DNA of 64,000 bases, taken from the sequence record MK250029.1. One strand, given 5' to 3'. The notes under the pieces are model-generated. The model made no database searches and had not been told where the DNA came from. It worked only from the letters and a program-made list of their open reading frames with translations. Positions 2,519 through 29,252 of this stretch are shown here, piece by piece (positions within the stretch are counted from its first letter, which is position 1; each line of letters begins with the position of its first letter). Position numbers and translations under genes: made by a program.

Positions 2519-3067
2519 TTAAAATTTTAAACCATTCATCATTTCAAAAACCTTAATCTTATTATTAATTCCATAAATAATATTATCAATAGTTGAAATA
2601 GTATCTTTCATATATTTACAAAAATTATCTAATAAATCTACTGATTCTTTTTCTGCAGACAACTGAGATTCTATTTGTAAATTAATAGCACTTTCATTTG
2701 TATAACGAATACCAGAAGATCCTGATTTCAAAGCTAAATATATACTTGATGCTTTTGTTTTATAATCTCTTGTTTGTTTACTTAAAATTTTTGCTGTTCC
2801 ATAAAATAAATCTATTGCTTCTTGTCTTTTCAAATAAACTTCATTCATTAATCCATCTATAGATTTAAGATCTTTCATACGTTCATTAAGAGACTTTATA
2901 ATATCAGTCCATTTATCCTGTAAATTTGTTAATGAATTTTCCAAAGAATTCTGCTGTTGTGTATTTGTTTGTACAGATGTATTATTAACACCAGAATTAT
3001 TTTGAATTGAATTATTATCTATATTATTTATTGTATTATTATCTTGCTGTGTATTTTCTTCATTCAT
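2519..3067 (-). CDS. Helical protein, possibly a UvsY-like recombination mediator
   Basis: 182-aa ORF with a low-complexity N/Q-rich N-terminus and a coiled C-terminus (LDNFCKYMKDTISTIDNIIYGINNKI) reminiscent of T4 UvsY; recognition only. Confidence 0.45.
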   Translation of the reverse strand: MNEENTQQDNNTINNIDNNSIQNNSGVNNTSVQTNTQQQNSLENSLTNLQDKWTDIIKSLNERMKDLKSIDGLMNEVYLKRQEAIDLFYGTAKILSKQTRDYKTKASSIYLALKSGSSGIRYTNESAINLQIESQLSAEKESVDLLDNFCKYMKDTISTIDNIIYGINNKIKVFEMMNGLKF

Positions 3068-3327
3068 ATAATTAAAGAACTATTCTTTATACATTATATA
3101 TATAATAAAAAATAAAGTCTTAAATGAATAATTTAATTAAAATCATATTTTAAAAATAATTTCAATCTCTAAAAGGAAATACCTTCTGAAAAAGAAAGAA
3201 TNNNNNNNNNNNNNNNNNNNNNNNNNNNNNNNNNNNNNNNNNNNNNNNNNNNNNTTTAAATAAAATCTTTATTTAATTTTTAAATATCTATCATTACCTT
3301 AATATCTTAATATTAATTATACTTGAG

Positions 3328-23176: not shown

Positions 23177-23707
23177 ATGGCAGAAATTACAGTAAAGACA
23201 ATTAATTGGTTTGATATTAAGGATGATGTAAAAATCATTAAGGAAAATAAAGCATCAAATCGTATTAATAACCGTAAAGTGTTAATGCATCATAAGAATA
23301 ATATTAATACACTAGATGGTTCTATTAATGTAAATCATGCAATTTGCAAGAAGGTTACTGCAAAGAATATTGAACCATTTGAAGGTATACTTGTATATAA
23401 TCCAAATGATAGAGTAAAATATCATTGTGATGGCGGACTTTTTAATGGTAAGACTATTTGTGTAAAGTGTCGTTCTGATGCATATAATTTTGGAGGTAAT
23501 TTTACATTTACAGAAGATGATTTATCTGCAGATATGATTGCTGTATATTACTATGATCCAGATACTAATCTTGGTCATTGGTTCCTTTGTGATAGAAGTC
23601 GTTTGAGAAAGAATAAGATGAGGAAGTCACAAAGTATTTATATTTGTCATCAGGATTATATTAAGGATCATGCTTGGTGTGAATATACAGTAACGTTTGA
23701 TAGATAA
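23177..23707 (+). CDS. Hypothetical protein
   Basis: Intact ORF behind the TATCTTTG box at 23132. Confidence 0.8.
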   Translation: MAEITVKTINWFDIKDDVKIIKENKASNRINNRKVLMHHKNNINTLDGSINVNHAICKKVTAKNIEPFEGILVYNPNDRVKYHCDGGLFNGKTICVKCRSDAYNFGGNFTFTEDDLSADMIAVYYYDPDTNLGHWFLCDRSRLRKNKMRKSQSIYICHQDYIKDHAWCEYTVTFDR

Positions 23708-23803
23708 TTTAAATTTTTTGAAAAAAAGTTCTCAAAATTACAGACTTTTGAAAAAAATTTAGATATATATAATATATAGTAAAATAAAATAAGTAAAGAG
23801 ATT

Positions 23804-23932
23804 ATGAAAACTTTAAATATGACATATGGTATGCATCCTGTTTGTGGTATGGTTCACATGTTCCCATGTGGAGGTGGTCGACCTATGTCTATACTTGAGT
23901 GTTTAAAGTTTTCTTGTATGTTGCAATCATAA
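23804..23932 (+). CDS. Short leader-like peptide (42 aa, Met/Cys/Gly-rich)
   Basis: MKTLNMTYGMHPVCGMVHMFPCGGGRPMSILECLKFSCMLQS, followed by a terminator and then the tRNA cluster. Confidence 0.45.
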   Translation: MKTLNMTYGMHPVCGMVHMFPCGGGRPMSILECLKFSCMLQS

Positions 23933-23960
23933 CCGGTTAACTCAACATATATACAAATTT

Positions 23961-24009
23961 AACCTCAAGTAGAATTTTGATCAATTTTCTACTTGAGGTT
24001 TTTCTTTTT
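23961..24009 (+). terminator. Intrinsic terminator immediately upstream of tRNA-His
   Basis: AACCTCAAGTAGAA/TTCTACTTGAGGTT 14-bp stem plus T tract. Confidence 0.8.
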
Positions 24010-24011
24010 AT

Positions 24012-24086
24012 GGTCCGTCTGGTGTAATTGGTAACATGGCAGATTGTGGTTCTGCAGTACAGGGTTCGAGCCCCTAACGTGACCCA
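24012..24086 (+). tRNA. tRNA-His(GTG), imperfect acceptor stem
   Basis: Anticodon arm GCAGA-TTGTGGT-TCTGC, D-loop AATTGGTAA, T-loop TTCGAGC. Confidence 0.85.
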
Positions 24087-24153
24087 ATTTAATTTTTAAG
24101 TAAACTATTAATATAGTTCTTAATATAATTATAAGAATATTTTATATTAATAT

Positions 24154-25154
24154 ATGGAAATTAAATAGTTTACAGATGATGCATTAAAACATGTATTTGA
24201 AATATGTACATCAACAATGAATATATTGGAATTATTAGGTTATGAACCATATAAAATAAGAGGATAGAAATGTAAAGAAATATTAAAAATATATGCTAAT
24301 TAGATTGGTGTCAATATAGAAGATTATAAATCAAATAATATAAAATTTAGGATATATAATGAATTACATCCTGTATGTAAAACATGTGGTAAGGACTTAA
24401 CATATTTTCAATATAAGCAAAAATAGGAATTTTGTTGTTCATCATGTGCAGCAACTTATAATAATAAACATAGGATATTATCAAAAAATATACTTAAAAA
24501 ATTTTCATAGGAACAAAACATAGAAGAACTATAGTCCAGAAAACGAAATTATGTATTAAATACAGAGTTAATTAAACAAGGTAAAATCTTAAATGATAAA
24601 AATATTACATATAAAGAACATTATATAGATATAACCAAACTTGGCGTACATATATGTCAAGTATGCGGAAATACATTTATACCTTCAATTACAGTAAAGG
24701 GAAATATATCTAAGTCTACTACATGTTCTGATATATGTCATAAATAGTTAGTAAGTGAAAAATCAAAATAGGCACTTTAGAAACTTATTAATGACGGTCG
24801 GCATAAAGGCTGGATGTCTAGAAATATTACAAGTTATCCAGAAAATTTTTGGATTAATGTATTAAATAATAATCATATAGTTTTTACACGTGAATTTAAA
24901 GTAAAAAAACGTTGTGGATATTATTATTTCTTGGATTTTTTATAGAGCATAATGGATATAAAATTGATTTAGAAATAGATGGACAACAACATAAGTATAG
25001 GAAAGAACATGATATTAAGAGAGATGAATATCTTACATCATTAAATTATATCGTTTATAGGATTGAGTGGAATACTATAAATACGGAAAATGGAAAATTA
25101 TTGATGAAAGAAAAAATTGATAATTTTTTAAATTGGTTTAATAATTTAGAGTAA
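24154..25154 (+). CDS. Zn-ribbon plus Vsr/DUF559-like endonuclease inside the tRNA cluster; needs a -1 frameshift at 24936-24942
   Basis: Frame 0 is open (TAG=Gln) to YYYFLDF; the catalytic continuation IEHNGYKIDLEIDGQQH...RDEYL...VYRIEWN lies in the -1 frame. Confidence 0.75.
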
Positions 25155-25170
25155 AATTATTAAATTATAT

Positions 25171-25244
25171 ATGGTAGTAGTTCAATTGGTAGAATGCTAG
25201 TTTTGGGAACTAGTGGTTTGCGGGATCGTGCCCCGCCTACCATA
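25171..25244 (+). tRNA. tRNA-Pro(TGG), atypical T-loop ATCGTGC
   Basis: ATGGTAG/CTACCAT acceptor, CTAGT-TTTGGGA-ACTAG anticodon arm, GCGGG/CCCGC T-stem. Confidence 0.85.
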
Positions 25245-25362
25245 CAGAATCGATAAATCTGATATTATCCTTACGTAATTAATCAGATTTAAAACTTTAG
25301 ATAGTAAGGTATCTATATAATGGAAGTTCACGCCTAAGGGAAGATTTATACATTATAATTTT

Positions 25363-25437
25363 ACTCTGTTAGCTCAATTGGATTAGAGTAATTCGCTACG
25401 AACGAATAGGTTAGGAGTTCGATTCTCTTACAGAGTA
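25363..25437 (+). tRNA. tRNA-Arg(ACG)
   Basis: ACTCTGT/ACAGAGT acceptor, ATTCG-CTACGAA-CGAAT anticodon arm, TTCGATT T-loop. Confidence 0.92.
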
Positions 25438-25446
25438 CAAACATAT

Positions 25447-25519
25447 ATCTCTATAGTTTAAGTGAATAAAATAGGATTTTCCTAAATTCCAGTTACTGGT
25501 TTGATTCCAGTTAGAGATA
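25447..25519 (+). tRNA. tRNA-Arg(CCT)
   Basis: ATCTCTA/TAGAGAT acceptor, GGATT-TTCCTAA-ATTCC anticodon arm with one mismatch, ACTGG/CCAGT T-stem. Confidence 0.8.
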
Positions 25520-25629
25520 CATTAATTATTTTGATAAAAAATAAGAGAAATATATAGACTTTTATTTAATTTCAACATATACATTATGTTAATTGAATGA
25601 ACAGTTAATAATTAATAATAAAAATACTA

Positions 25630-26045
25630 TTAAAATGTGGGGTTTTGAGTGCCCATCATTTAAAGAGTTTCGAGAAGAAGACATTGTATGTAAAAGCATT
25701 AAGTTTCATTTAGCTGATGAAATGTAGTCAAGCGTGATGGTATCGATGTACATGGGTCCATCCGTATAACTTCGGGGAATCATAAGCATTAATCTTGGAG
25801 AGTACAGTTTTTAGTCTGAAATGACGAATTTTCCTACTGGTTGCTCAATATGATATTAAGAGTCGGAGATAATTATTTGTAAGTTCCACAATTACAAGAG
25901 GAAAATGGAATTAAGTTGTCGGAATAACGTGATTATTCTATGTGCGAGTAAGAGAATGAAAGTAGCATTATATGTATGGTGTACGTATGCATATAGAAAC
26001 AAAGCAAATAATAACCCTTAGAGAATTTGCCGAGAAAAGGACATT
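25630..26045 (+). ncRNA. Candidate large structured RNA in the tRNA cluster
   Basis: About 400 nt with raised GC, no long ORF and many local hairpins (TTTCAT/ATGAAA, TTGTAA/TTACAA, GAATAA/TTATTC, TATATGTAT/ATGCATATA). Confidence 0.4.
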
Positions 26046-26062
26046 AATAGTATTTATAATTT

Positions 26063-26221
26063 GCGGGTATAGCACAATGGTTAGTGTGTCGGTCTTCCAT
26101 ACAAGAATAAACTTGTAAAATTAAACTATATGCTAATAATAAATGTGGTATTATAAAATAAGAGTTCGAATCTCTTGCATATAGCAAACCGAAAATGTCG
26201 GTTCGATTCCGATTACCCGCT
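26063..26221 (+). tRNA. tRNA-Gly(TCC) interrupted at 37/38 by an 87-nt insert (26100-26186)
   Basis: Removing the insert gives a perfect cloverleaf: GCGGGTA/TACCCGC, GCAC/GTGT, TCGGT-CTTCCAA-ACCGA, GTCGG-TTCGATT-CCGAT, U73. Confidence 0.9.
26126..26187 (+). ncRNA. Anticodon-less mini-tRNA nested in the tRNA-Gly insert
   Basis: CTATATGC/GCATATAG acceptor-like stem, D-like arm with GG, canonical T-arm AAGAG-TTCGAAT-CTCTT, followed by CAA like neighbouring tRNA 3' ends. Confidence 0.75.
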
Positions 26222-26521
26222 CAAAGATAAAATTAGGTATACATAGTTTTGTATCGAAGCTTTATATTACCATTAGTTGTAATATTCAAATCGTTCGTTG
26301 ACATGGTTATTCCGTGATGTTAGTAGTAAGTTATAATTAATTTATAGCAAACGGAATATTAATAAAAACGTACTCGGCGTTTAAGTTGAATGTACCACGC
26401 TGCCCGTATGGTAGATATTTAATTAAGCATTTAATTAAGTTGAAACATATGTTTAAAAAACTTATGGTACCACGAGTGTTTTCTACGTTGTTTCACTCAT
26501 TTTTTTGATATAATAATATAT

Positions 26522-26578
26522 GAGAGTCATAACAGCAAATTTAGTTCTATTGTTTATTGGGATAACATAAGACTCTTG
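26522..26578 (+). ncRNA. T-armless tRNA-like element, Pro(TGG)-like
   Basis: 7-bp GAGAGTC/GACTCTT stem, ACAGCAAATT motif, TGTTT-ATTGGGA-TAACA arm, 3-nt connector where the variable loop and T-arm should be. Confidence 0.5.
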
Positions 26579-26594
26579 AATCAATTATATTAGG

Positions 26595-26655
26595 GGAGAT
26601 ATTACAGCAAATTATTATTTAGGATCATACTTTTAATATGAAATTCTTGTCTCCT
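26595..26655 (+). ncRNA. T-armless tRNA-like element, Lys(TTT)-like
   Basis: 7-bp GGAGATA/TGTCTCC stem, ACAGCAAATT motif, perfect arm TCATA-CTTTTAA-TATGA, 6-nt AATTCT replacing the variable loop and T-arm. Confidence 0.7.
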
Positions 26656-26663
26656 GTTTATTT

Positions 26664-26743
26664 GGGTAAATGCCTGAGTGGTCGAAGGGAATGATCTGCA
26701 AAATCATTATTATACGTCGTGTGTTCGAATCACACTTTACCCT
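26664..26743 (+). tRNA. tRNA-Cys(GCA) with an extended variable region
   Basis: GGGTAAA/TTTACCC acceptor, ATGAT-CTGCAAA-ATCAT anticodon arm, GTGTG-TTCGAAT-CACAC, U73. Confidence 0.9.
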
Positions 26744-27070
26744 CTAATATAAAATATTTCCGTGGTATACAGCACGTAAAAAGAGGTTGACTTGTATATT
26801 CTATAGACCTACTGTATAATAATATATATGATGTACATGTGAAACACCATGTTCTATTAAGAGTTCATTAACTGAGGTTAATTTTGAATTGCACTGATAT
26901 TAGATGCATAATATATAATGAATATAACGACGGTACTGTGAAATGACTATTATTTTTAGTTGCTTGGAAACGGCGTACGAAGTTTTTATAATAGTGGAAG
27001 TAATGATAAAACAGTTAAATGTAAATCTTTCTGAGACAATGGGGACAACTTGTAGTAAGAGAGTATTTTT

Positions 27071-27174
27071 GTTGATATAGTTTAATGGGAAAACACCCAA
27101 ATCCCAGGGATAAGAGATAATACTTTGAAATAGGTATTAGAAGATTTTAGATGGTTCGATTCCATTTATCAACT
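27071..27174 (+). tRNA. Aberrant or interrupted tRNA, identity undetermined (104 nt)
   Basis: Good acceptor GTTGATA/TATCAAC, D-arm GTTT/AAAC and T-arm GATGG-TTCGATT-CCATT, but about 30 extra nt and no clean anticodon arm. Confidence 0.6.
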
Positions 27175-27183
27175 CAAATTAAT

Positions 27184-27304
27184 GAAGTGTGTAGTTTAAT
27201 TGGTAAAATATCCTTTGAATAGGACTGTGCGCAGATAGAACATAATGTTAGTCATATTAATCGCATTATTGATAATGATGTTGGTTCGATTCCAACGACA
27301 CTTC
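27184..27304 (+). tRNA. Aberrant or interrupted tRNA, identity undetermined (121 nt)
   Basis: GAAGTGT/ACACTTC stem, D-loop AATTGGTA, T-arm GTTGG-TTCGATT-CCAAC, about 45-50 extra nt in the middle. Confidence 0.6.
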
Positions 27305-27590
27305 CTAATAAATAAAAAGATCTCGGTAATTAGATAAAACATTATATGAGTGAAGCAACTCACCATAACTGCAGATAAATGAGTGAGGGACATAAGAGTG
27401 TATGAAGAAAGATGGACTATGGACACCACCATATAATTGCGTTTTCAATAATAGTAAAGTAAACTTTAGTATAAGTTCCATTAACGCTAAAATAGAAACA
27501 TTGTTATTGAAGTCTACTATGCGTGCGATGGTTTAATGAAACCATTGTAGTTCTAAGGCATTGTAAAACGTTTTATTTATTAATTTTTAT

Positions 27591-27664
27591 GGCGAGATAG
27601 CTTAGTTGGTCAGAGCGCAGGATTCATATCCCTGAGGTCGTGTGTTCAAATCACACTTTCGCTA
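27591..27664 (+). tRNA. tRNA-Met(CAT), elongator-like
   Basis: GGCGAGA/TTTCGCT acceptor, CAGGA-TTCATAT-CCCTG arm, GTGTG-TTCAAAT-CACAC. Confidence 0.88.
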
Positions 27665-27779
27665 CTATTATTTTTTGATTGTTTATTTTTATAAGAGGTA
27701 TATCATTTTTTGGTATATCTCTTTTTTATTTAGGAAATAATGTGTATCTTTGAATTGTTATTAATAAAATAGTAATACA

Positions 27780-28259
27780 ATGAAGAAATATAAAGTATAT
27801 CAATTTCGTAGAGAAAACGAAAATATAATTGATGATTATCATGAATCATATGATGCAAGAATGAAAGTTATTGCAGAATATGAGATTTCATCTGATAGAA
27901 ATGATCCTGTTATTATATCAGAAGATATATGGCATATGTGTAATGTTCATTGTTGGGATCATACATGGTCTGATGGACAAGTTGTTAAACGAGATGATAT
28001 TACATTAACACCTACATCTGATTTTGATGGATTTGTTAATAGTGATATTGTAGTTGAAACTTCAGATGGATTATATCTAGCAGAATCATGTGGATTTATG
28101 AAGGTGAATTCATTGAATTATGCTATGCATAGAATTACTGTAAGATTTCCATTTATCTCTTATTATGATATAAGAAATAAAGAGGATTTTAATGAAGATT
28201 TACTTCGTGATATTCGTAATGAAATTCAGAAAGAATATCAGAAGAGAATTGAAGAGTAA
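27780..28259 (+). CDS. Hypothetical protein (early-type, no TAG)
   Basis: Intact ORF behind TATCTTTG at 27745. Confidence 0.8.
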   Translation: MKKYKVYQFRRENENIIDDYHESYDARMKVIAEYEISSDRNDPVIISEDIWHMCNVHCWDHTWSDGQVVKRDDITLTPTSDFDGFVNSDIVVETSDGLYLAESCGFMKVNSLNYAMHRITVRFPFISYYDIRNKEDFNEDLLRDIRNEIQKEYQKRIEE

Positions 28260-28400
28260 TAATAAACAATAGATATTGTTGGCAACATAGAAAATAATTT
28301 TTTGAAATTTTTTCCTAGAATATTTTTTTATTTGGAATAAAACATGTATCTTTGTAATGTAAATAATAAACAAATAATAAACAATTAAAAAATAAAGATT

Positions 28401-28847
28401 ATGAATACAACAGTTAAAATTTCTCCAGCACAGGTTTTCCCAGTAGCTAACAAGATTCGTGCAGCAAAGCACATCTCTATGAAGGAAGCATACGCAGAAG
28501 CAAAGGCACAGCTTATTGCAGAAGCAGAGAATGCAGTGAAGACTGCAGAGACAGTAGTTGAAACACCTACTAATGTAGTTGAGACACCAGCTAATATGAA
28601 GTTGCATACAGAGTTGGTAGAGAAGATGAAGAACGGAAACGTTAAGTTTGTATTCTTCAATAACAAGGGTAAGAAGATTACAACTACAGGTACTCTTGAT
28701 ATGTCAAAGGTTCCTACAAACCGTGAGGTTCAGGGTCGTAAGACTGCGAAGGATGAGAATACTCAGGTATTCTATGATGTTCGACATGGTGTATACCGTT
28801 CTTATCAGAAGGATAAGTTGGTAGAGATTATTTCAAAGAAGAAGTAA
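28401..28847 (+). CDS. SH3 beta-barrel (DUF2693-like) protein
   Basis: VKFVFFNNKGKKITTTGTL...QVFYDVRHGVYRSY resembles the Bacteroidota DUF2693 pattern; host-type promoter at 28347; terminator at about 28866-28913. Confidence 0.6.
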   Translation: MNTTVKISPAQVFPVANKIRAAKHISMKEAYAEAKAQLIAEAENAVKTAETVVETPTNVVETPANMKLHTELVEKMKNGNVKFVFFNNKGKKITTTGTLDMSKVPTNREVQGRKTAKDENTQVFYDVRHGVYRSYQKDKLVEIISKKK

Positions 28848-29252
28848 AATGTCTTATATATGTTAAAGAATAATGGTGAGTTTCTTGTAAGTAGACAATT
28901 CACCATTATTCTTATATAATATATAAATCAATTCGAATAAATATAGAAGTGATTTTATTTAATATGTGAATTGATAATTTGTGAAACATGTGTCTGACGG
29001 AAAGCACATGTATTTTTCGTGCAATGTTCAATTTTAATTAATTTTAATTTTGATAGGTTAAAGGAGTAAACCTATAAGCGCGGAATAATAAAGTCGTATT
29101 GAAAATCAAATTTTGATTCCATAAAAGTTGGAATATGGTTTTTGAAGGCTAAGATGAAGTTATAAAGAATTTAACATATTATATATGTGATATATGTATA
29201 TGTTATTTCTTTTTCATCGAATAATAAAAAATAACATAGAAACAATTAATTT

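Follow-up and report, generated by a model that had tools for sequence, protein, structure and literature searches.

What kind of molecule is encoded by two short tandem elements in the tRNA cluster of Prevotella phage Lak-C1? The stretch analysed here, called the window below, comprises 64,000 nt of sequence record MK250029.1 and was 100% identical to Lak-C1, with window position 25000 corresponding to record position 87000. An earlier note on this DNA, made from the letters alone, had described the elements as T-armless tRNA-like units of Lys-UUU and Pro-UGG type. Both units are real and have the layout described. Comparison with other genomes showed, however, that they belong to a widespread phage RNA family of about 60 nt, not represented in Rfam, in which a terminal stem is followed by the motif ACAGCAA and which is linked to genes of the DUF2828 family. 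With a probability of about 0.6, the units are RNA partners, akin to Y RNAs, of a Ro60-like phage protein and present mimics of anticodon arms.

A family of small RNAs linked to DUF2828 genes

The two units were resolved into the following parts, given in window positions:

26522..26578, + strand: unit 1, a small RNA of the DUF2828-associated "stem + ACAGCAA" family
26522..26528, + strand: 5′ strand of the unit 1 terminal stem, GAGAGUC, pairing with 26571-26577; also found in a third Lak unit (below)
26532..26541, + strand: conserved single-stranded motif ACAGCAAAUU of unit 1
26551..26567, + strand: weak internal hairpin of unit 1, UGUU/AACA (26551-26554 with 26564-26567), with the 9-nt loop UAUUGGGAU
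26571..26578, + strand: 3′ strand of the unit 1 stem, GACUCUU, and an unpaired G at 26578
26594..26656, + strand: unit 2, the second small RNA of the same family
26594..26600, + strand: 5′ strand of the unit 2 terminal stem, GGGAGAU, pairing with 26649-26655; carries a compensatory change in Lak-B3
26604..26613, + strand: motif ACAGCAAAUU of unit 2, the exact 10-mer
26625..26641, + strand: look-alike of an anticodon stem-loop in unit 2, with a 5-bp stem and the loop CUUUUAA (Lys-UUU type)
26649..26656, + strand: 3′ strand of the unit 2 stem, GUCUCCU, and a conserved unpaired G at 26656

Unit 1 (57 nt) has the layout GAGAGUC-AUA-ACAGCAAAUU-(29 nt)-GACUCUU-G, its stem consisting of six Watson-Crick pairs and a terminal G.U pair. 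Unit 2 (63 nt) has the layout GGGAGAU-AUU-ACAGCAAAUU-(35 nt)-GUCUCCU-G, with five Watson-Crick pairs and two G.U pairs. AUA and AUU are the spacers. The tandem arrangement, the 7-bp end stems and the shared motif 3 nt after the stem were thus present as the earlier note had described them, and its CTTTTAA loop on a perfect 5-bp stem was confirmed in unit 2 (UCAUA/UAUGA, 26625-26629 with 26637-26641). Its ATTGGGA loop on a 4-bp stem in unit 1 needs correction: the four contiguous pairs close the 9-nt loop UAUUGGGAU, and a 7-nt AUUGGGA loop would require a U.U closing pair. The unit 1 loop resembles the loop UUUGGGA of the phage's own tRNA-Pro.

The exact 10-mer ACAGCAAAUU occurs at only two sites within the window, those of units 1 and 2. 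When one mismatch was allowed, ACAGCAAATT was not enriched in the window (14 sites versus 10 expected), and the other Lak copies of TWACAGCAAAT were located inside coding sequence and lacked the stems. The folding energies of the two units were unremarkable (z of −0.5 and −0.8 for the minimum free energy) and were dropped as evidence. Because the window sequence and thermodynamics alone prove nothing, the significance of the units has to come from comparison with other genomes.

The first lead was provided by the Rfam model RF01414, which at a permissive threshold aligned unit 2 over its full length through the terminal stem and UUACAGCAA. IMG/VR was then scanned loosely for ACAGCAAA-N55-85-ACAGCAAA, and a flanking-stem filter was applied. 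Before filtering, the matches were mostly chance and coding-repeat matches; after it, two convincing tandem arrays remained (L092 and L108), both abutting a gene whose product has about 520 aa (phrog_850 "RNA-binding protein", E-value 9e-128; Pfam DUF2828 and DUF7788).

The association with this gene was measured in 80 IMG/VR viral loci fetched through a DUF2828 homolog. A unit was counted where a stem had 7 bp or more, two or more of them G-C, and its 5′ strand was followed by ACAGCAA after 0-4 nt. On the gene strand 203 units were found, in 72 of the 80 loci, versus 7 on the opposite strand and 6-8 with three scrambled motifs. Within 250 nt upstream of the DUF2828 gene lay 62 units, and the others were found just past the gene end or interleaved with tRNAs; the median unit length was 61 nt. 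In an alignment of 89 sequences ACAGCAA was invariant and the G following the 3′ strand nearly so, giving the phage consensus A-AAGACAC-nn-ACAGCAAUUU...GUGUCUU-G-U. Although the aligned units had been pre-selected for pairing, all seven stem pairs covaried with changes on both sides (173 cells), 97.6% being paired versus 29-50% when the partners were slid.

A covariance model, R1, was built from 89 non-Lak units, no Lak sequence being included. Applied to the 80 viral loci, R1 gave 194 matches at an E-value of 0.01 or less, every one on the gene strand. Replication was carried out on 80 DUF2828 loci from bacterial genomes, mostly of gut Clostridia and also of Veillonella, Bacteroidales and Treponema; the 52 R1 matches lay on the gene strand throughout, and again all seven pairs covaried (98.9% paired versus 35-54% slid). 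Moreover, G.U pairs arise solely when the units are read on the gene strand. The structure of the family is RNA-level and strand-specific. No Rfam family scored above threshold for the units of Lak or of 13 other loci.

Three units also form an array beside a DUF2828 gene on L233, a 99-kb contig of an unrelated phage. The second of them closely parallels Lak unit 2, with ACAGCAAAUUUUAGGA, a stem carrying the CUUUUAA loop, AAUUCUU and the 3′ strand, and the first has a T arm, AUGGUUCAAAUCCAU. The array, on the − strand at about 2680-3070 of the reverse complement, is flanked by two terminator-like hairpins and looks like a self-contained transcription unit.

When the whole window was scanned on both strands, R1 returned two matches only, 26520-26580 (20.9 bits) and 26592-26658 (19.5 bits), which correspond to units 1 and 2. 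Conservation was then considered within the Lak phages, where the genomes of Lak-A are 97-99% and those of Lak-B about 79% identical to Lak-C1 across the window stretch. Lak-B3 carries both units at the homologous place (L001 2384-2532), and R1 matched them with 27.9 bits (unit 1, L001 2384-2450) and 24.5 bits (unit 2, L001 2462-2532). Stem and motif of unit 1 are identical in Lak-B3 and Lak-C1, and its interior cannot be aligned. In unit 2 the stem GGGAGAU/GUCUCCU is replaced by GGGAGGC/GCCUCCU, G-C standing in place of one A-U pair and C-G in place of one U.G pair. The loops differ: in Lak-B3 that of unit 1 is the 8-nt GUUUGAAG, and that of unit 2 is the triloop GCU closed by 8 bp; if two A-U pairs open, 6 bp remain and the loop becomes UUGCUAA. 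In one contig of Lak-A type the unit 1 loop reads AUUGGAA.

A third Lak unit, with the stem GAGAGUC/GACUCUU, was found by R1 outside the window, about 115 nt upstream of the Lak DUF2828 gene and on the same strand:

MK250029.1 26981-27057, − strand: third Lak-C1 unit, outside the window
MK250029.1 25541-26866, − strand: Lak-C1 DUF2828 gene, outside the window

This third unit is present beside the DUF2828 gene in Lak-A-like, Lak-B3 and Lak-C1 genomes. In whole-genome scans the three Lak units rank at the top both in Lak-C1 (540 kb) and in Lak-B3. Two weaker R1 matches in Lak-C1, MK250029.1 42337-42394(−) and 393778-393837(+), with 18.4 and 17.9 bits and E-values of 0.3-0.4, may be due to chance.

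The DUF2828 protein and comparison with known RNA-protein systems

The Lak DUF2828 homolog aligns over its full length with its relatives at 27-30% identity, with many invariant residues. Its own structure model was set aside (predicted local distance difference test, pLDDT, 64; template modelling (TM) score 0.25-0.29 to Ro60), and a relative, P0001, was used, for which a good model was obtained (pLDDT 84.4; predicted TM score 0.83). In a Foldseek search with the P0001 model, the top 13 matches in the Protein Data Bank were all Ro60/TROVE proteins, with TM scores up to 0.59 and including those of Thermus phage phiLo, Xenopus, human and Deinococcus; they were followed only by isolated von Willebrand factor A (vWA) domains. 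In the ESM Atlas, 16% of the members of one cluster of DUF2828 domains carry Pfam TROVE. Given these top matches and the presence of TROVE in this cluster, DUF2828/DUF7788 is, by its predicted fold, a divergent Ro60-like protein with a TROVE-type helical ring and a vWA domain. A single-sequence search of solved structures with the protein gave no match, and a profile reached TROVE chains only at an E-value of 2.2, so that folds had to be compared. The family comprises more than 7,000 clusters at 90% identity and was matched in 325 stretches of bacterial genomes. No paper tying DUF2828 to RNA binding with partner RNAs was found in the literature.

The resemblance to Ro60 and its Y RNAs extends to the arrangement of the genes. 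Canonical Ro60 genes of bacteria and phages have adjacent genes for Y RNAs, which are closed through their ends and mimic tRNAs (PMC4201824), and the Ro60 protein of phage phiLo binds two Y-type RNAs, Yrl1 and Yrl2, that are encoded upstream of its gene (PMC12135203), so that phage examples of the canonical system are known. The system described here shares with these a partner protein predicted to have the Ro60 fold (TROVE ring and vWA domain), small RNAs right beside the gene and on the same strand, pairing of the 5′ and 3′ ends, a second module that imitates part of a tRNA, and links to tRNA clusters and RNA ligase genes. There are also differences. The protein is a divergent DUF2828/DUF7788 protein and not a Pfam TROVE member, and the phage RNAs measure about 60 nt (57 and 63 nt here) versus 80-130 nt. 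Y RNA and YrlA have the Ro60 site, GNCGAAN0-1G or a bulged helix, on a long end-to-end stem (PMC4201824), whereas the 7-bp stem of the units has no CGAA motif and their signature is the single-stranded ACAGCAA(A/U)UU. Furthermore, what the units imitate is an anticodon arm, and the tRNA parts mimicked by YrlA are the T arm, the D arm and the acceptor stem. The system would work like Ro60 and Y RNA, yet its RNAs depart from Y RNA and YrlA in the CGAA-type site, in length and in model match.

A mechanism can be proposed on this basis. Units 1 and 2 would be genes for non-coding RNAs of about 57-63 nt, defined by a module of a short helix, two or three nucleotides and the single-stranded ACAGCAA(A/U)UU. 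We infer that this module is the binding site of the ring protein; by analogy with Ro60, the surface of the ring may hold the helix, with the single strand placed inside or close to the central hole. The interior, which varies, would serve as a display cassette, holding a Lys-UUU arm in unit 2 and a weakly Pro-UGG-like one in unit 1. The RNAs would be transcribed along with the + strand tRNA operon and probably released from its transcripts by tRNA-processing enzymes. The resulting ribonucleoprotein (RNP) would most likely act in phage-host conflict over tRNA anticodon loops. It might sequester anticodon nucleases or enzymes that bind tRNA, acting as decoy or sponge, or it might provide a platform on which tRNAs are repaired or modified. 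The comparisons made here show membership of the family, covariation of the stem, strand bias, gene linkage, the predicted fold of the protein and enrichment of anticodon-loop look-alikes; physical binding, maturation and biological role are what we infer.

Several findings weigh against this proposal. Gene adjacency is the chief argument for an RNP, and units 1 and 2 of Lak lie about 60 kb from the protein gene, the third unit alone being adjacent. R1 matches were obtained in only about 30 of the 80 bacterial-genome DUF2828 loci, so that the pairing is not universal. The R1 scores of the Lak units are modest (19.5-20.9 bits; whole-genome E-values 0.07-0.16). Neither GNCGAAN0-1G nor a bulged helix, the canonical signatures of Ro60 binding, is present in the units, whose length falls short of that of Y RNAs and whose stem has just 7 bp, and the Rfam Y_RNA and YrlA models gave no match at E-values up to 10 in window positions 23500-29000. 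The anticodon look-alikes occur in a minority of units and are not kept between Lak clades. Finally, the read evidence consists of assembled contigs only, which give neither strand nor RNA ends nor splice junctions nor proof of transcription.

If the proposal is true, DUF2828, a large family of unknown function, would gain a concrete role, that of a Ro60-like protein served by a class of partner RNAs of its own. The RNA family is widespread, easily recognised and absent from Rfam, and it occurs in gut phages including Lak megaphages. The units, together with tRNAs that bear inserts (below), put a predicted protein-binding site beside an anticodon arm, a placement that points to an unexplored layer of phage-host conflict involving tRNA cleavage, repair or modification.

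A second known group, the Class I RNAs of Dictyostelium, was compared through RF01414. These RNAs are 42-65 nt long, with a short terminal stem conserved in structure and not in sequence and a variable, A/U-rich interior; the 11-nt motif CCUUACAGCAA stands directly 3′ of the 5′ strand of the stem, and the RNAs start with AAG and end with CUGU (PMC7919456). Size and end-to-end stem are common to them and the phage units, which also resemble them in position and sequence of the motif and in end nucleotides. The motif CCUUACAGCAA agrees with Lak at 9 of 11 positions in unit 2 (AUUUACAGCAA) and at 8 of 11 in unit 1 (CAUAACAGCAA). Unit 2 scored 33.7 bits with RF01414 (E-value 0.0013), below the gathering score of 41.5, and unit 1 gave no match; other phage units reached only 15-24 bits or were not reported. 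The settings also differ, the Lak units residing in a Prevotella phage and Class I RNAs in dictyostelid genomes, with a DUSE promoter about 60 nt upstream and an RNA polymerase III terminator. Moreover, the known direct binder in Dictyostelium is a protein with an RNA recognition motif (Rnp1A/CIBP) and is not Ro60-like, and the supplements of PMC7919456 contain no mention of DDB_G0281243 or DUF2828.

DUF2828 itself occurs in phages and eukaryotes, as the fold search of the ESM Atlas returned a eukaryote-dominated DUF2828 cluster, and DUF2828 genes are mentioned in plant papers. It is conceivable, though on balance rather doubtful, that the phage "stem + ACAGCAA" RNAs and Class I RNAs are the same kind of molecule, namely the RNA partner of a DUF2828-type Ro60-like protein. 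If so, this would provide the first biochemical context for Class I RNAs, which are abundant, have been known for two decades, were reported as exclusive to dictyostelids and lack a known mechanism. Another consequence would be that DDB_G0281243, an uncharacterised pull-down protein (bioRxiv 10.1101/2020.04.05.026054), becomes a candidate Class I partner.

Anticodon-arm look-alikes and other explanations

The interior of the units was searched for hairpins resembling anticodon arms in 179 unique family units, a strict look-alike being defined as a stem of at least 5 bp with a Y-U-NNN-R-A loop. Such look-alikes were present in 43 of the 179 units, versus 1.5 ± 1.2 (maximum 6) in 200 shuffles. 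The loops were CUUUUAA (12), CUUGAAA (7), UUUGGGN (7), CUGCAAA (6), CUGUUAA (5), CUCAUAA (4) and CUGAUAA (3). The loop of unit 2, CUUUUAA (Lys-UUU), is thus the commonest of the family, and UUUGGGN (Pro-UGG) recurs. Several Lys-type arms read UUGA-CUUUUAA-UCAA, which we take to be the arm of E. coli tRNA-Lys. In longer units of the family, a T arm or an entire tRNA-like body is present as well. On the other hand, an anticodon-like hairpin is missing altogether from more than half of the family's units. The look-alike is an optional cassette and not the family core.

The earlier note's view of the units as partial tRNA mimics is upheld in its general sense by the enrichment of look-alikes. The Lys-UUU label denotes a real, recurrent feature, and the Pro-UGG-like label of unit 1 holds more weakly. 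A covariance-model scan of phage genomes had been proposed there to see whether the loop always carries a valid anticodon, and an anticodon-like hairpin turned out to be missing from more than half of the units. Loss of the stems or of the 7-nt loop in homologs had been named there as a refutation, and it applies in part: in Lak-B3 the stems are kept, and the loops and anticodons are not.

The module is not confined to free-standing units. In the 80 viral loci, a hairpin followed after 0-3 nt by AC[AU]GCAA(U/A)UU was found 120 times on the gene strand versus 6 times on the other strand and 7-10 times in controls. Mostly it forms an insert of 45-60 nt in tRNA genes that are otherwise normal, placed within the 5′ strand of their anticodon stem. 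Whether free-standing or inserted, the module stands about 8-11 nt 5′ of the anticodon arm or loop. All 357 tRNAs of these loci lie on the gene strand, 129 of them receive an intron call, and 28 family units finish 15 nt or less before a tRNA. Recurrent neighbours of the DUF2828 genes in the 80 loci (L137-L216) include an ATP-dependent RNA ligase of DRB0094 type (12 of 80), an IscS-like cysteine desulfurase (10 of 80) and the phrog_200 "lipoprotein" (18 of 80). tRNAs with the hairpin-module insert were seen in L144, L148, L149, L155, L156, L176 and others (for example L156 2342-2891 and L176 2350-2680), and single loci carry a ROOL RNA (L141), a transfer-messenger RNA (L140) or a group I intron (L157).

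The main rival explanation starts from these inserts and holds that the helix with ACAGCAA is a processing or splicing signal and not the core of a stable RNP. A phage machine, possibly the DUF2828 protein together with the RNA ligase, would cut and rejoin RNA at the marked sites; it would free the anticodon stems of tRNAs from their 45-60-nt inserts, with the free-standing units arising as by-products of this pathway or regulating it. The presence of the module within so many tRNA genes, the intron calls, the ligase genes and the packing of units only a few nucleotides from tRNAs and from one another all favour such a signal. However, no spliced junctions were seen in the contig-level data, a mere cleavage signal has no need of conserved closed ends and of cassettes enriched in look-alikes, and Ro60-type proteins are not known as nucleases or splicing factors. 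We consider this explanation unlikely, and it is nevertheless the strongest of the alternatives.

More doubtful still is the possibility that the units are stand-alone decoys for anticodon nucleases or anticodon-reading enzymes, a role of the kind that the earlier note had suggested. Such decoys would need no DUF2828 protein, and the units would lie near its gene only because both reside in tRNA clusters. Lys-UUU is a known target of PrrC-type and PARIS-type nucleases, and phage tRNAs that counter these anticodon nucleases are found in tRNA clusters and carry anticodon loops such as Lys-UUU. That CUUUUAA is the commonest loop of the family and also that of unit 2, that real tRNA-Lys genes are scarce in the 80 viral loci (8 of 357 tRNAs), and that Lak units 1 and 2 are distant from the protein gene would all fit a decoy of this kind. 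The phage tRNAs concerned are complete and decode, whereas the units are not tRNAs and are accompanied by their own Ro60-like protein. Moreover, the invariant part of the family is the stem with ACAGCAA and not the anticodon-like loop, which more than half of the units lack; unit positions peak at the ends of the DUF2828 gene, and Lak retains one unit directly upstream of that gene.

That the units are functional tRNAs without T arm and D arm, aminoacylated and decoding Pro and Lys codons, is very improbable. They do share with T-armless and D-armless mitochondrial tRNAs the overall size, the 7-bp end stem and, in the case of unit 2, a canonical-looking anticodon arm; a linker of 2-3 nt, the unpaired base that follows the stem and the good Lys-UUU arm of unit 2 also speak for tRNAs. 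However, no remnant of a cloverleaf is present, and ACAGCAA, which has no counterpart in tRNAs, replaces the D-arm region. The loops differ between Lak clades and the stem and motif stay constant, most family members have no anticodon arm, and the phage already possesses a normal tRNA-Pro(UGG) at 25171-25245. As the earlier note had foreseen, tRNA scanners miss the units: neither the Rfam tRNA model nor ARAGORN in its bacterial mode or its mitochondrial mode, which is meant for such tRNAs and made 31 calls in the window, reported them. The T-armless tRNA identity proposed there has to be given up, the stem with ACAGCAAAUU being the signature of a different, DUF2828-linked RNA family.

The least credible alternative is that the units are functionless chance look-alikes or decayed tRNA remnants, for which ordinary folding energies and AT-rich DNA could be cited; it is opposed by stems and motifs kept across Lak clades with a compensatory change in a region only about 79% identical overall, by an independent covariance model that finds exactly these sites, and by family-wide covariation and strand bias.

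The surrounding tRNA cluster and its expression

Both units sit within a + strand tRNA cluster at window 24.0-27.7 kb, in which ARAGORN called six tRNAs and Rfam added two with large inserts (26063-26221 and 27071-27174). Two of its genes bear on the units:

25171-25245: normal tRNA-Pro(UGG), the phage's own, with the loop UUUGGGA
26664..26744, + strand: tRNA-Cys(GCA), beginning 8 nt past unit 2

The position of tRNA-Cys(GCA) provides a context for co-transcription and for formation of the unit 2 3′ end by RNase P. In metatranscriptome contigs from four runs, the Lak cluster was far deeper than its flanks, at 116-1083x (116-369 in run X6) versus 16-21x for the flanks in X6, a depth that is compatible with transcription. 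One metatranscriptome contig begins at 26526 right after a sequencing adapter; this was noted and not relied on.

The tRNAs with inserts showed further features. The tRNA-Gly(UCC) at 26063-26221 (+) has an 89-nt insert after the anticodon; within the insert, CUAUAUGC/GCAUAUAG form an acceptor-like stem and AGAGUUCGAAUCUCU a T arm. Its Lak-B3 homolog (L001 1882-1960) is without the insert, and in one metatranscriptome contig 26 other letters replace 26082-26195. A tRNA-like gene at 27071-27174 (+) has an insert in or near the anticodon arm (Rfam tRNA 38.9 bits, 43 extra nt), and a similar one at about 27190-27301 (+), ending in the T arm GGUUCGAUUCCAAC, was called by no tool. With the Rfam YrlA model, two tRNAs with inserts gave no more than marginal matches of 25 bits.

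A further element of the cluster lies at 25590-26050 (+), in the stretch of about 440 nt between tRNA-Arg(CCU) and tRNA-Gly(UCC). No Rfam match and no long open reading frame were found in it, and its folding energy was ordinary (z 0.24). It is about 95% identical between Lak-C1 and Lak-B3, versus about 79% around it, contains a compensatory change (UUUCAU..AUGAAA to UUUCGU..ACGAAA) and has the greatest contig depth of the region in the metatranscriptomes (up to 1083x). This stretch probably encodes a large, abundant non-coding RNA of Lak phages that has so far escaped description.

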